IMG/VR virus record: IMGVR_UViG_3300027933_000001
Location: 1-45,185 of that record
Reading direction: 5' to 3' (one strand)
DNA length: 45,185 nt
Made by a program: the position numbers and the translations under genes. This document shows positions 37,707-44,983 of the stretch, piece after piece. Below the pieces are notes generated by a model that did not search any database, was not told where the DNA came from, and saw only the letters and a program-made list of their open reading frames with translations. The stretch's first letter is position 1. Each line of letters begins with the position of its first letter.

Positions 37707-38378
37707 TCAGAATACTCCTGCGTTTTTAAGTATTAAGTACACTGCGTACCTTAGCACTTTAGACCTTGTAACTTTATGATTTATTGCAAAGTTATCGAGC
37801 TTCTCTAACAACTTCTTATCCATCTTTATCGACAACACACCAGTATCACCGTCAAGAAGCTTCTTATCATCGTAATTGGCATCAATCTCTTTGCTATTTA
37901 AAATAGTATTAGCAAGTGTATAGCGTATTAATTCGCCAGCAGTTTTACCTATTTTGCATGAATACGAAATAAGTAAATTTTTAATTTCCTTTGAGATCTT
38001 TACTGTAATTATAATGTTGTTGTGTTCAAGAACATCTTCTCTATATTGTACACCAACACTTTCTAGTCTGTGCACCTTCACTGCAAAAGGCTTAGGCTTT
38101 GCTGTCGTATAAACCCTTATTTTATACAGTAAATCGTTGCCAAACATAAAACTTATACGTTGACCATTCTTATCCATCATCACTACGTATTGACCATTAT
38201 TGAAAGTCACAAAAAATCCGCTCTCGCTTAGTATTTTTAGCAGTACATTAACTTTGTTTTTAGAAATATAATCGAGATGAAAAGTGAATTCTGTATCTGC
38301 TTCTCTAGTTATAGTGTATTTTATATTTAAAGAATCTAAATGTTCTTTTATTAGATCTACAACTGATGACAGAGTCAT
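37707..38378 (-). CDS. Protein with two C-terminal RHH domains
   Basis: [15 protein letters not shown] and [27 protein letters not shown]. Confidence 0.8.
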
Positions 38379-39244
38379 ATCGCTCGCCCCTCGCCATATT
38401 TTTTCTTACACCAGGCTATGCAACCAGTGTCGTCATCGCCAGGGTCACCAAAATGAACCTTGCAATCATGAATGCACTGATATAGGTCAGCAAGACCCAT
38501 ACTAGAAAGTATACATTTAGGTATGCCGTCACGATATACACCTTCTGGACATCTGCTAATTTCGAAACCCCATATTCCGTTAAGGACATTCTCTACAGTC
38601 ATTGGTCTATCACTAGTTAAATTGTTCAATATTATGCAATTAGCCCCAGCATACTTAAAGAGGCGGGGATGGACTTTCTTTACTTCTTCTAGCATTTTCC
38701 ATGCAACTTGACGTATTTCCCACTGTGCCCTTGAGCATAATCTGAGGGCAAAGAAGTTGTATAACTCTCTGGCGTTCATTGTCACAACGATGTTTGTATT
38801 TACTCCGTTAGGTAGGACGTATCTGGCATCTTCCTCTGGAACACCGTTCTGTAATAGCTCATAGTAGTATTTGTAAGCGTCGTCGTAAGCCTTCTTAACT
38901 AGTTCCTCGTTCCTCTTTTCCGCAGAAGGCGGAGTTACTGGTTGGTAGTACTCATCAACGGGCTTAGCAAACCTATGGCTCATTTGTGTGTATGATGCAA
39001 TGCGGTGTCTCACTAGTTGATGAGAGGCAACCCTGCTTATACCCTCTATTGAGAAGGTATAACTACTGTGTTCTAGTGGTGACCAGTAGCCGTGAATGAT
39101 AGCGTCACGGATCCACACTTCTACTTCCTCATCCGTCATTGTCTTCTCGTGGTAATCCCAACCCTTTCTAGACCTGCTCATCTTAGAAGCGATTGCTACT
39201 ATTTTTTCTCCATCTTTCGTATAAGAAACTAGTTCAACTTTCAT
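38375..39244 (-). CDS. thyX: Flavin-dependent thymidylate synthase
   Basis: [16 protein letters not shown] (RHR-x7-S), [20 protein letters not shown]; start revised to MKVELV. Confidence 0.95.
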
Positions 39245-39260
39245 CTTTTTCGCCCCGTTT

Positions 39261-40112
39261 TTAAAATAATTGAGAAATTTTCCTTTCTTCACTAGCTATT
39301 GGTATGTCATATTTGTACGGTGGTTTTAGTTTTTCCCTCAATAACTTTAGCGTGTTTATTATACTTTCGTAGTCGAGCTCAGCCATTAACTCGTCGTAAC
39401 TGCTAGATCCATAATATGCTGAATATATTGACCAAGGTGCTTCATAAAGCAAACTGGTTACGTGTTCGACCATATATTTATGAAATAGTAGTATTTTATT
39501 CAAATTTTCAATAAACTCTTTCAGGCATGCCTTAGGTAATGCGTAGCCTTTTATTGATAATAAAGAATTGAGGAGATACAATGCGAGACCAGTAACCTTA
39601 TAGAACCCACCACCTTCTTCAGTTACAAGACCTAGGGCTAACAACGGTACTACGTCCTTTTTAGGTGCTTTAAATCTGAGCGATGAAATGTAAGAAGTGT
39701 ATTTATTTAGCAGTTCGGATAAATCTCGCAACTCAATTAAACTTGATTTATGAGCCAGTAGTGTTATGACCAATGCTATAATACCTAGCTCCACAGTTTT
39801 ATAATATTCATCGTCGATAAGGTCTACATCAAAATATTTCTTTATAATATCCTCAAATTTGCTTAACGCGTCAGGAGATATATTAAGAATAACATCGCTT
39901 ACAAACCCATTTTTAAAAGCTTCTATTATAAGCCTCTCGTTTTTTATTGGCTTGCTTGAAAAGAAAACATTGAGAAAGTTCATTGCTTCTTCAGCAACAA
40001 TATTAGGGGAAAGGGAAGGGCTTTCCACATTTAACACCCCGAGAACAAAATACCAGGTCGCCTTTTTAGAAGATACTTCCGATTTAGAAAAACGAATAAC
40101 TAGAGCTATCAT
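39261..40112 (-). CDS. Hypothetical protein
   Basis: 283-aa ORF starting immediately after the terminal CRISPR repeat. Confidence 0.75.
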
Positions 40113-40401
40113 ATTTCAGTTCTTCCTTATTTCAACTGAGGTAGAGATGTTAAAGAGACATATGGAAAACTTTTAGTTCTTACTTATTTCGACAAAAGTG
40201 GGTACTGGTAAGGTAGAATGGAATAGAGTTTTTCAGTTCTTACTTATTTCAACTATTTTTACCCCGTCCCTGGAAGAGGCGGGGCAACTTCCCGCTACGA
40301 CGCCCCCTTCCCTCGCTCTACCCATCTTTTAGTTCTTCCTTATTTTAGCTCACTTTCCAAAAATAAAAACTTTTCAGTAGGCACTTTTAGTTCTTCCTTA
40401 A
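40113..40401 (-). CRISPR. Virus-borne mini-CRISPR array: 4 full repeats plus 1 truncated repeat, no cas genes in window
   Basis: 24-bp repeats at 40113, 40170, 40230, 40326 and 40384 (partial); minus-strand consensus GTTGAAATAAG(G/T)AAGAACT(A/G)AAAG; spacers of 33, 36, 72 and 34 bp. Confidence 0.82.
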
Positions 40402-41958: not shown

Positions 41959-42783
41959 CTACTCTTCTTGTTGTTGAATATTCTCTTCAACGAGAACCAA
42001 TGGAATTTTATCTAAACCTAGGAGACGGCATAGGTAATTGTCACACTCCTTGTAACCTACAATTTTGTATTTTTCTGGGTTGTTATTTGCTAAATTAAGA
42101 ATTTCGTCATAAATACTCTTTGCAATTTCTCTAAGACGATCTTCTACCCTTTCACGAATTGCGTCTACAACTTCATATATTTTATCAGCTATATCGTCTG
42201 GTACATCGCCAAACACCTTCTCATAAGCACGTTGAAAAGCACTTGCCATGTCCTGAAAATACCAACATAAAGTGCATGGAAGAGTATCAACGATCATCGC
42301 CACAAAAGCACCGATTTCTGGTCTATTACTAAAATCCTCAATATATATGATATCAGGCAATTCGACTACATGACCTTCTAAACCTTCTGGATCCAAGCTA
42401 TATGAATCGAAACAGTCCTCTAACGCATCGATTATGTGCTTAACTATGGGTTCAACATCATAATTCTTTTTCAAGTAATCAAACAGGTAATCTAGCATAT
42501 CTTCTTGCATATGATAGTCTTTCAGTGTTTCTAACATACATTTAAAATCATAATCGCACGTAGTAGCTATTAATTGTGCTACTTCGTCTTTCGGGAATTT
42601 TTTATAGTTTTTGAAAACATAATCAGAGAAATTAACGCTTATATCATACAATACGTTATCCAGCTCTTTCCTATTTTCTATGCCTAAAATTTTCCTTAGT
42701 TTCTTCCTATTATTCAGCACTTCAGTAACACAATTCAAATTGCAATACTCACTTATTTTTAGAAAATATTCGTTTGTATTCAT
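41959..42783 (-). CDS. Acidic helical hypothetical protein
   Basis: 274-aa ORF with RBS and TATA-like TTTAAATA. Confidence 0.8.
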   Translation of the reverse strand: MNTNEYFLKISEYCNLNCVTEVLNNRKKLRKILGIENRKELDNVLYDISVNFSDYVFKNYKKFPKDEVAQLIATTCDYDFKCMLETLKDYHMQEDMLDYLFDYLKKNYDVEPIVKHIIDALEDCFDSYSLDPEGLEGHVVELPDIIYIEDFSNRPEIGAFVAMIVDTLPCTLCWYFQDMASAFQRAYEKVFGDVPDDIADKIYEVVDAIRERVEDRLREIAKSIYDEILNLANNNPEKYKIVGYKECDNYLCRLLGLDKIPLVLVEENIQQQEE

Positions 42784-42884
42784 AATTTATCCCCTCTCGT
42801 CGAAATGAAATTTTGATAAAAAAGTATTTAAATACATGGGGCTATCCATCCCCGCTGGCGTGGCTTTCCGCCCTGGAAGAGCGA

Positions 42885-43951
42885 GTGTGCAATAGGATTC
42901 TTATTGAAAACCAGCCCTTGCTCATGTGCAATATCATTCTTATTGACTCTTTCTTTTGCTTGTGTGCAGAGCTATTATTAATTGAGGTATATATTTGCTT
43001 ATGTGCAATAGTGGTATTATTGAGCAACTTAATTGCTTATGTGCAATACAAATATTATTGAATTCTACTATTGCTTATGTGCAAAACGTGTATTATTGAA
43101 TGCATTCTTTGCTTATGTGCAGGTAGATTGTTATTGACTTACCTCATTGCTTGTGTGCAGTCAACTGATTATTGAAACGATTTCCTGCTAATGTGCAGGT
43201 TATTTGTTATTGAACTTTGCTCTTGTTTATCTGCAACGACCACGTTATTAAGCCTTTTGCTTGCTTGTGTGCATTGCTTATCTTATTGAAAGGTATTATT
43301 GCTTGTGTGCAGTACATTAATTATTGAAATAGCTGATTGCTTGTGTGCAGTTGCATCGATATTGAGGAGTAGTATTGCTTATGTGCAGGTAAGGGATTAT
43401 TGAGCTATATGTTTGCTCATGTGCAGTTGATCCTTTATTGAGTGTTTCTCTTGCTAATGTGCGGTCATGAGTTTATTGAATAATGTTATTGCTTGTGTGC
43501 AGTTAGATTGTTGTTGAATATGTTTCTTGCTTGTGTGCAATACGCCTCTTACTGAATTCCTGAATTGCTCGTGTGCAATAGGGTTCTTGTTGAAAACCAA
43601 CCCTTGCTCATGTGCAGTTTTACATTTATTAACGATACCTTTTGCTCATGTGCAAGACGGCGTTTATTGACGTTATCTTTTGCTTATGTGTAAGTTTGCC
43701 GTTATTGATCTTTATTTTTGCTTATGTGTATATGACCTCTTATTAATTTTTTCGCTTGCTTATGTGCAGTTTGTATTTTATCAACAATCAGGATTGCTTA
43801 TGTGCAGTAGGGTGTTTATCGACTATACTTATTGCTTGTGTGCAGTCCAACCGTTATTGAGGTATATATTTGCTTATGTGCAAGAATGGCTTTATTGAGC
43901 GTACTTCTTGCTTATGTGCAATATCGTTCTTATTGATTTTTTCCTTATGTA
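42885..43951 (-). ncRNA. TIGR-type tandem interspaced guide array (28 units, 38-bp period)
   Basis: Plus-strand unit TTGCTT(A/G)TGTGCA-N9-TTATTGA-N9 with almost all spacers unique; begins directly after the stop codon of the Nop/IS110-like gene. Confidence 0.88.
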
Positions 43952-44983
43952 TTATTTAATAATCTTTTTCTTCTTAAGCCACGTTGTAACCTCCTCTCTG
44001 TTTATACCTAGTTCTTCTATTATCTTTTCAAATTTAGCTTTATATTTTGCAGTCTTCGTGTCAACGTAATAGTCTGTAATTGGCGATTCAATGAAATCTT
44101 CGTGCTTCTTGAGGACTTCGTATTCTTTCCCCAACACTACCTTGTAAGCCTCATGTAATGGCACACCTTGCCTATAGTGTAAAGAGATTGCGAAATACTG
44201 TGATAATAGTAAGGATATTGCTTTCCTGATAGCAGTCCTCTGTACTCTTAGCTTATTCCAGTCTGGATGCTTAGTTGCGATTTCTTCTTTAAATGATTTT
44301 ATTATCTTTGCGTAAACACCGCCAGCTAATATGAGGTTGTTAGCTAAAATTCCTAGCAGAAATGTTTTTACTGTTCTGTTATACTTAACGTTTTTCGCTG
44401 ACGTGCCAATAAGTTTCGTCCCATCGTTAGGGCATAACCACCCTTCCTTCGAGGGAATTGCTGGTTTCCCATTCGAGGACTCACCAGCGTAATAGTAATA
44501 TCCGCATTTAGAACATGTAAACATTACGGCTAAACCAGCGTACTTCCTGAACTTATTAATGTTATACTGAAACTTTGGTGGATATGCATAAACGATAAGT
44601 CTAGCACCGTTAACAGCTCCTATCCCCCTAATAAACACCAGGAAGTTAGTAAATTCAGGGAACTTAGTTACCACCTTGCCTATAAGTCCCTTGGCTATCT
44701 CCTCTTGTCTGAGTAGTTCCATGAACCTCTCTATGAGGTCATTAGACGGCGTTTCTTCAACAATTCTCACAGGCTCACCGCATACTGGACATTTATCGCG
44801 TTTTTCGTCTTCCTTAAGTAATATCATATGACCGTTCTTGCACGCTGTATATCTCCTTAGGAAGACCCACTTATTGTTCTCTTTTTTTGCCCCTATCCTG
44901 TTCCCAAATGCTACTCTAAGTTTTATTATATCATCTCTGAATGCTACCAAATCTCTTAAAGGAACTAAATCTGCCTCGCTCAT
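43952..44983 (-). CDS. Tas-like (TasA-type, nuclease-less) Nop/IS110-related RNA-binding protein with two Zn-ribbon insertions
   Basis: LRDLVAFRDDIIKLRVAFGNRI coiled coil; FLVFIRGIGAVNGARLI, FRKYAGL, YNRTVKTFL, RTAIRKAISLL; no DEDD/RuvC or HNH seen; adjacent dual-spacer array. Confidence 0.82.
   Translation of the reverse strand: MSEADLVPLRDLVAFRDDIIKLRVAFGNRIGAKKENNKWVFLRRYTACKNGHMILLKEDEKRDKCPVCGEPVRIVEETPSNDLIERFMELLRQEEIAKGLIGKVVTKFPEFTNFLVFIRGIGAVNGARLIVYAYPPKFQYNINKFRKYAGLAVMFTCSKCGYYYYAGESSNGKPAIPSKEGWLCPNDGTKLIGTSAKNVKYNRTVKTFLLGILANNLILAGGVYAKIIKSFKEEIATKHPDWNKLRVQRTAIRKAISLLLSQYFAISLHYRQGVPLHEAYKVVLGKEYEVLKKHEDFIESPITDYYVDTKTAKYKAKFEKIIEELGINREEVTTWLKKKKIIK

Follow-up and report, generated by a model that had tools for sequence, protein, structure and literature searches.

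A TIGR-Tas locus of an ATSV-like archaeal virus and a probable target of its guides in a Sulfolobales membrane-protein gene

The dual-repeat array and its Tas protein

The window, by which we mean the whole stretch of 45,185 nt that was analysed (positions 1 to 45,185 of IMG/VR virus record IMGVR_UViG_3300027933_000001), carries a TIGR-Tas locus of the dual-repeat type, which is an already known locus type and here belongs to an archaeal hot-spring virus related to Acidianus tailed spindle virus (ATSV). The array lies directly downstream of the tas gene and begins at the tas stop codon. The features of the locus are:

43952..44983, minus strand: tas gene for a 343-aa Nop-domain Tas, homologue of ATSV_B343 (by model, Foldseek and profile)
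42879..43953, minus strand: dual-repeat TIGR array with a period of 38 (39 for three units)
42879..42891, minus strand: degenerate terminal edge repeat that keeps the tas-sense UGCACAC part alone, that is, a 3'-truncated edge
42818..42853, minus strand: where the array transcript may end, with a GGGG/CCCC hairpin (42838-42853) and, after it, a run of T (42823-42818)

The array has 28 units, of which 27 are full and one, proximal to tas, is degenerate. On the plus strand, each unit consists of a 13-nt repeat (consensus TTGCTTATGTGCA), a 9-nt spacer, the 7-nt repeat TTATTGA and a spacer of 9-10 nt, while in the tas sense (minus strand) the order is edge UGCACAYAAGCAA, spacer, loop UCAAUAA, spacer. 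Degenerate repeats are found at either end, and the 3'-truncated edge at 42879..42891 agrees with TIGR array ends as described in Faure et al. (2025). The hairpin and T run at 42818..42853 may mark the end of the array transcript. In the tas-proximal unit (43937-43953), the degenerate edge overlaps the tas stop codon; this unit probably provides no working guide, because just ~4 nt remain for its first spacer.

Two alternating short repeats, spacers of ~9 nt and an adjoining tas gene give the locus the layout of TIGR-Tas systems. The repeats fall just outside the 8-12 nt range quoted for TIGR (Faure et al. 2025, PMC12045711), the 13-nt edge being one nucleotide above it and the 7-nt loop one below. 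All arrays that we collected belong to one repeat family. In the window, the minus-strand edge UGC-ACAUAA-GCAA combines UG and CAA with a G:C and a C:G pair, and the loop UCAAUAA has UC and UAA and is free of Watson-Crick pairs. Box C/D sRNA genes were considered as well, and a search of both strands of 42700-44050 against Rfam returned nothing at E <= 1. A CRISPR array has a single 25-36-nt repeat that alternates with spacers of ~30-40 nt, plus cas genes. This identity was rejected, as the array has two alternating short repeats and 9-nt spacers instead, and no cas genes lie nearby.

The AlphaFold (AF2) model of the 343-aa protein has a pLDDT of 89.8, and its top Foldseek matches are TIGR-TasR 9mty (E = 5e-5), TasH and then IS621 of the IS110-family recombinases. 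A profile built from Tas homologues matches 9mty over the Nop core (E = 2e-4); Pfam gave no match to a Nop domain in the protein. Two Zn-ribbon inserts of the CHCC/C4 type occupy residues ~31-78 and ~154-194, and for these Pfam returned just weak zinc-ribbon or rubredoxin-type matches. The model begins with a coiled-coil helix and does not have the N-terminal RuvC or HNH of the TasR and TasH subtypes; neither domain was found in the protein and its inserts by the AF2 model or Pfam. Since no RuvC or HNH is recognisable, we filed this Tas as TasA-like.

The flanks of the array are ~75% identical at the nucleotide level to ATSV (KU645528), which has the same gene order (ATSV_B343, repeat region, B149) and identical 13-nt and 7-nt repeats. 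Some whole units are common to both viruses, window unit 7 being ATSV unit 4 and window unit 12 being ATSV units 10 and 20, but most ATSV spacers differ from those of the window, and ATSV lacks the GWFIGF unit described below. It also lacks the 274-aa ORF that is found in the window between the array and the B149 homologue. In ATSV, in SYV1 and in 11/11 further IMG/VR loci with a tas homologue, the array lies directly downstream of tas in equal relative orientation. The ATSV array was cited by Faure et al. 2025 (PMC12045711; their ref. 39, Hochstein et al. 2016) as an earlier TIGR-like array, and no target had been proposed for it before.

The 274-aa ORF (41959-42783, minus strand) has ~68% DNA identity to a gene of Sulfolobus monocaudavirus SMV3, and Pfam gave nothing informative for it. 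A ThyX-type thymidylate synthase gene (38375-39292, minus strand; PF02511, E = 8.5e-67) has a counterpart in ATSV. At 40110-40400 there is a second repeat cluster of five to six ~24-nt repeats (core TTTYAGTTCTTMCTTATTT) spaced 57-60 nt apart; its position is that of the "possible viral CRISPR locus" in the ATSV annotation, and it resembles a mini-CRISPR array of the kind carried by viruses.

Two near-identical units and a Sulfolobales membrane-protein gene

Two units of the array are of particular interest here:

42892-42917, unit 1: plus-strand letters, read from the sequence, ATAGGATTC / TTATTGA / AAACCAGCCC; on the minus strand, predicted target GGGCTGGTTT + ATAGGATTC; last unit in the tas sense, adjoining the 3'-truncated edge
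43578-43603, unit 19: plus-strand letters, read from the sequence, ATAGGGTTC / TTGTTGA / AAACCAACCC; on the minus strand, predicted target GGGTTGGTTT + ATAGGGTTC; internal unit

A preliminary description of this DNA had noted that the two units differ by one base per spacer, and our rereading of the letters agrees (42897 A versus 43583 G; 42914 G versus 43600 A), although a third difference, in the 7-nt loop repeat (42903 A versus 43589 G), had been missed. All three differences are transitions. Both units have the rare 10-nt second spacer, and each precedes a minority variant of the edge, TTGCTCATGTGCA. Of the 378 unit pairs in the window, none other is as close: these two units differ at 2/18 compared positions, the next-closest pairs have 4 and 6 differences and the bulk 10-15, so the similarity of units 1 and 19 is not due to chance.

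When the reverse complement of one spacer is joined to the other, both units had been found to read G-W-F-I-G-F, with both changes in third positions of Gly codons. This codon arithmetic is correct, but its outcome hinges on the order of joining, and the tenth base of the longer spacer was left out. In simulations, 50% of random pairs with one transition per spacer had a stop-free frame with identical peptides in that joining order, and 65% did when either order was allowed; the synonymous pattern inside the array is therefore uninformative alone. Across 22 unit families from 12 arrays, codon-periodic variation was absent, with 20/72 site pairs congruent modulo 3, as in the null.

We searched for natural sites with the pattern GGBTGGTTTATAGGRTTC, which follows the same joining order. 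IMG/VR gave 3 matches, in a T4-like prohead protease and an unknown phage ORF, which were judged to be chance. Among GTDB species representatives there were 37 matches, none of them in Sulfolobales; the strains that bear the gene described next are not among these representatives. The metagenome collection gave 82 matches, five of which sit in one homologous low-GC gene (GC 0.34-0.36) for a membrane protein of 141-146 aa with the motif FF(I/M)GWFIGF. All others, on 77 metagenome contigs, 37 unrelated genomes and 3 viral contigs, were judged chance matches, and as about half of these are also in the GWFIGF frame, the frame alone proves little. A protein search places the family in Sulfolobales, with members in Saccharolobus islandicus L.D.8.5 and Sulfolobus sp. 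SCGC AB-777_G06, and GWFI is invariant in 17/17 homologues. Hence the sequence predicted for a contiguous coding target occurs in nature, with the 18-mer in frame in one Sulfolobales gene family.

Nine natural versions of the site were seen, four of which were fetched via protein homology and not by the DNA pattern. Six are distinct, and within the 18-mer only the two Gly wobble sites vary. In the following list, the base before the oblique bar is the base that precedes the 18-mer:

A/GGT..GGA: 14 loci, the commonest; no exact unit
A/GGG..GGA: L107/L147; exact 18/18 match to the unit of L007/L008/L164
A/GGG..GGG: L131, L158 and L159; no exact unit
G/GGT..GGG: metagenome contig L064; exact 19/19 match to window unit 19
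G/GGC..GGG: AB-777_G06 and L194; 18/19 to unit 1 and to unit 19
G/GGT..GGC: L195; no exact unit

Unit 19 matches L064 in the GWFIGF frame and also at the tenth spacer base. The related viruses L007, L008 and L164 have a third version of the unit, whose spacer is 9 nt long and which equals A/GGG..GGA over 18/18 positions. For unit 1, which would correspond to the allele G/GGC..GGA, no exact natural match was found, the best being 18/19 in Sulfolobus sp. AB-777_G06. The proposal that the two units represent two alleles of one gene, which was to be checked by an exact search for both 18-mers, is thus supported for unit 19, whose 18-mer is natural, coding and in frame, and holds only approximately for unit 1. 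Unit 1 is terminal and lies beside the truncated edge, and it may be an old copy or a copy of an unsampled allele.

The GWFIGF gene always lies just downstream of an 80-aa plasmid regulator of the plrA type (PF05584). In AB-777_G06, it is inside an integrated conjugative plasmid of the pNOB8 type, which encodes a DUF87/TraG-like ATPase (44-52% identity to the ATPases of pNOB8, pKEF9 and pHVE14) and also contains a DUF1286 gene and an SSV-type integrase fragment. On one ENA contig the gene adjoins a 1020-aa TraG/VirD4-type protein, and in S. islandicus L.D.8.5 there are integrase fragments on either side of it. The Yellowstone strain S. islandicus Y.N.15.51 has a chromosomal gene for an identical target protein, and there the cassette of plrA and the membrane gene is flanked by toxin-antitoxin-like genes on one side and glmM on the other. 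Several JGI hot-spring samples code for the same protein, and among them 3300005964 also yielded the tas-array virus locus L005. Because the two-gene plrA cassette occurs in at least three genomic contexts, it appears to be mobile itself. Where an identical 146-aa protein and plrA recur (L149, L152 and L157 compared with L148), the neighbours are glmM, a Ni-insertion gene and a TraG-like gene.

No homologue of the target gene was detected in the window or the related virus loci, and none of the target protein among known phage and plasmid records. The window itself has no site within 2 mismatches of any unit in either joining order, and re-paired controls gave the same result. The other units of the window had no match in ~90 kb of target-element DNA, and units of related arrays had a few matches there with 1-2 mismatches, all in the same spacer order. 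For example, unit 13 of L012 resembles two ParE-like toxin genes of S. islandicus Y.N.15.51 (L148, 8160-8177 and 9203-9220), which lie 0.8-1.8 kb upstream of the GWFIGF gene; both mismatches are at synonymous third-codon positions. These sites could form a second target of the allele type on this element; a follow-up scan for the ParE site found unrelated EVTGDI motifs only. The ATSV unit 13 family matches a 138-aa gene 1 kb downstream of the GWFIGF gene. As re-paired controls give ~3 such matches, those near the cassette are only suggestive. Unit matches to plasmid pYN01 were not above control, and the conserved window units 7, 12, 15 and 25 each had 0-4 unrelated matches in IMG/VR.

Weight of the match, array evolution and transcribed strand

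From the size of the sequence space and from peptide and codon frequencies, we roughly estimate that the degenerate 18-mer would be rather unlikely to turn up anywhere in Sulfolobales DNA by chance. As this base chance is not negligible, the case rests on added coincidences. These are the agreement of the tenth base, the correspondence of two unit variants each with a different natural allele, the mobile-element context and the co-occurrence of target and virus. When all agreements are counted together, chance becomes a barely credible explanation, and the GWFIGF site is very probably a genuine target of the array units.

The alternative that survives best is that a unit was duplicated within the array and drifted neutrally, and that the match in Sulfolobales is fortuitous, the sequence being short and coding for a hydrophobic hexapeptide. 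Exact or near duplicates are indeed common: ATSV units 10 and 20 are identical, the SYV1 array holds one identical pair, and the L010 and L012 arrays have near-identical pairs. The rare 10-nt spacer and rare downstream edge that units 1 and 19 share are what sister copies would show; their three differences are all transitions, the modulo-3 test over 22 families was null, and chance matches are often in frame. However, drift predicts no 19/19 match in the host clade of the virus itself, no 18/18 natural match for the third variant carried by other viruses and no agreement of the tenth base with the ATG-preceded alleles. We therefore consider it unlikely. An origin by duplication is compatible with the preferred reading, in which the units are guides to the GWFIGF gene, and it is only the coincidence that is disfavoured.

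Related units reveal how such arrays change. In the 22 unit families, variable positions cluster at the plus-strand 5' ends of spacers, which are the box-D-proximal 3' ends on the tas-sense guide and the centre of the predicted target, whereas spacer positions 1-6 from box C are conserved. Duplicate or part-shared pairs in the window include units 2/28, 3/26 and 7/17, with units 3/26 sharing one spacer only, and unit 2 of L008 is a half-unit chimera of the first spacer of ATSV unit 21 and the second spacer of ATSV unit 22. Such chimeras and the sharing of single spacers (units 3/26) suggest that new spacer pairs arise via deletion or recombination at loop repeats. Since near-duplicates and chimeras of neighbouring units are common, the arrays evolve by duplication, point change and repeat recombination.

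The assignment of the target depends on the transcribed strand. For tigRNA1 of TaTasR, the target strand begins with spacer A and continues with the reverse complement of spacer B (Faure et al. supplement, PMC12045711), and the 8-nt 3' overhang and the C-5 rule agree with this geometry (Faure et al. 2025, PMC12045711). By this tandem rule, transcription has to come from the minus (tas-sense) strand for the joining order adopted in the preliminary description to give the predicted target. In 13/13 loci the array adjoins the stop codon of tas, and in ATSV it is tightly flanked by minus-strand genes on both sides. On the minus strand, the edge UGC...GCAA is similar to the UGCG/AGCCA edge of TaTasR: UG would serve as box D, and box C would be CAA where TaTasR has CCA. 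Furthermore, the tandem-spacer geometry for a tas-sense transcript yields the natural matches of 19/19 and 18/18. Minus-strand transcription is thus most likely, as far as can be judged from sequence.

With plus-strand transcription of the array, its actual targets should read ATAGGRTTC then GGGYTGGTTT, and the match found would be irrelevant. A palindromic TATA-like element at ~42824-42833, upstream of the plus-strand start of the array, and truncated terminal edges on both strands would fit with this. But the swapped order (IGFGWF), which had been put forward earlier as a further check and was searched in IMG/VR with a gap of 0-2 nt, gave 6 scattered matches of a chance-like kind, none of them low-GC archaeal and none sharing a gene. 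The ATSV array is ~37 bp from the next gene, which leaves little room for a promoter, and the UG/CCA boxes are a poorer fit for the repeats as read on the plus strand (UU...GCA and UU...UGA) than on the minus strand. We regard transcription from the plus strand as quite improbable. The idea that the repeats are no guides but protein-binding iterons or an origin-like repeat field beside an unrelated 343-aa protein accords with the annotation of the ATSV region by Hochstein et al. only as a repeat region, but it has very little chance of being right, as the protein has a Tas/Nop fold and its closest structural counterparts are solved TIGR effectors, TIGR loci are defined by just such a pair of alternating repeats with variable inserts of 9 nt, and spacers turn over between related viruses while repeats stay fixed.

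Proposed activity and comparison with known systems

Taken together, our analysis suggests that the TIGR-Tas locus of this ATSV-like virus probably carries allele-specific guides against the Sulfolobales GWFIGF gene and would block its target by means of a nuclease-less Tas. A minus-strand pre-tigRNA would be transcribed together with tas and cut into unit-length tigRNAs of ~38 nt, each of which would load a Tas dimer and read a DNA site of 18-19 bp. The first spacer, GGGYUGGUUU, is expected to pair with the template strand, and the second, GAAYCCUAU, with the coding strand in the half-site next to it. Units 1 and 19 would then be sister copies of one guide aimed at the GWFIGF-coding stretch. 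They differ at two four-fold degenerate Gly positions where natural alleles differ, and each of the two polymorphic bases is the fourth from box C in its spacer.

In TaTasR, positions 4-5 form the seed, in which mismatches are not tolerated (Faure et al. 2025, PMC12045711). If the same seed applies here, one guide could not cover all alleles, because the polymorphic bases are inside the mismatch-sensitive region, and the virus lineage may keep allele-specific copies for this reason. The simplest route to the variants would be duplication followed by selected point changes. As Tas has no recognisable nuclease domain, binding and blockage of transcription or replication are likely to be the outcome, rather than cutting. 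Blocking by RNA-guided Tas is, in our analysis, the most likely activity, and the blocked target would be a rival mobile element or a host locus.

TIGR-Tas systems were described in 2025 (Faure et al., PMC12045711), and both that study and a September 2026 survey describe their natural targets and the origin of their spacers as unknown, one reason being the flood of false positives that targets of 18 nt bring. What is new here is a credible natural target together with an allele-tracking series of guides, both of which are open problems in the literature; the allele series of the array and that of the Sulfolobales mobile-element gene corroborate each other. A wider claim, to which we give about even credence, is that this is the first natural TIGR-Tas protospacer, in which a viral nuclease-less Tas acts against a plasmid or host gene and guides diversify at seed positions following synonymous escape. 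Such an arms race would proceed without known adaptation machinery, through duplicated units, point changes and recombination of half-units. Since cultured Yellowstone strains, e.g., S. islandicus Y.N.15.51, carry the target, the role of a viral TIGR array, the seed rule in nature and the diversification of units are testable in a tractable archaeal model.

Virus-borne mini-CRISPR arrays of Sulfolobales reportedly serve inter-virus conflict (Medvedeva et al. 2019). The array in the window is like these in being a guide array without an adaptation module that is directed, on our reading, against competing mobile elements in the same hosts. It differs from them in its effector family, in its split guides that would read both DNA strands, and in targets of 18-19 bp that have no PAM.

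The system also resembles TaTasR (Faure et al. 2025, PMC12045711; PDB 9mty), as a Nop-domain effector lies beside an array of edge, 9-nt spacer, loop and 9-nt spacer, and the natural match obeys the geometry of spacer A plus the reverse complement of spacer B. The repeats of the window start with UG/UC and end with CAA/UAA, where those of TaTasR start with UG and end with CCA. Unlike TaTasR, the Tas of the window has no RuvC and carries two Zn-ribbon inserts, the unit, with its 13-nt edge and 7-nt loop, is 38 nt long instead of 36, and some spacers are 10 nt. According to a preprint (Xu et al. 2026, 10.64898/2026.09.09.750476), nuclease-lacking TasA and dead TasR repress transcription in engineered reporters. 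Like TasA (10.64898/2026.09.09.750476), the Tas of the window has no evident nuclease, and RNA-guided binding or repression would be its most economical activity. Compared with that work, whose available portion does not describe Zn-ribbon inserts, we propose here a natural intragenic site in a mobile element.
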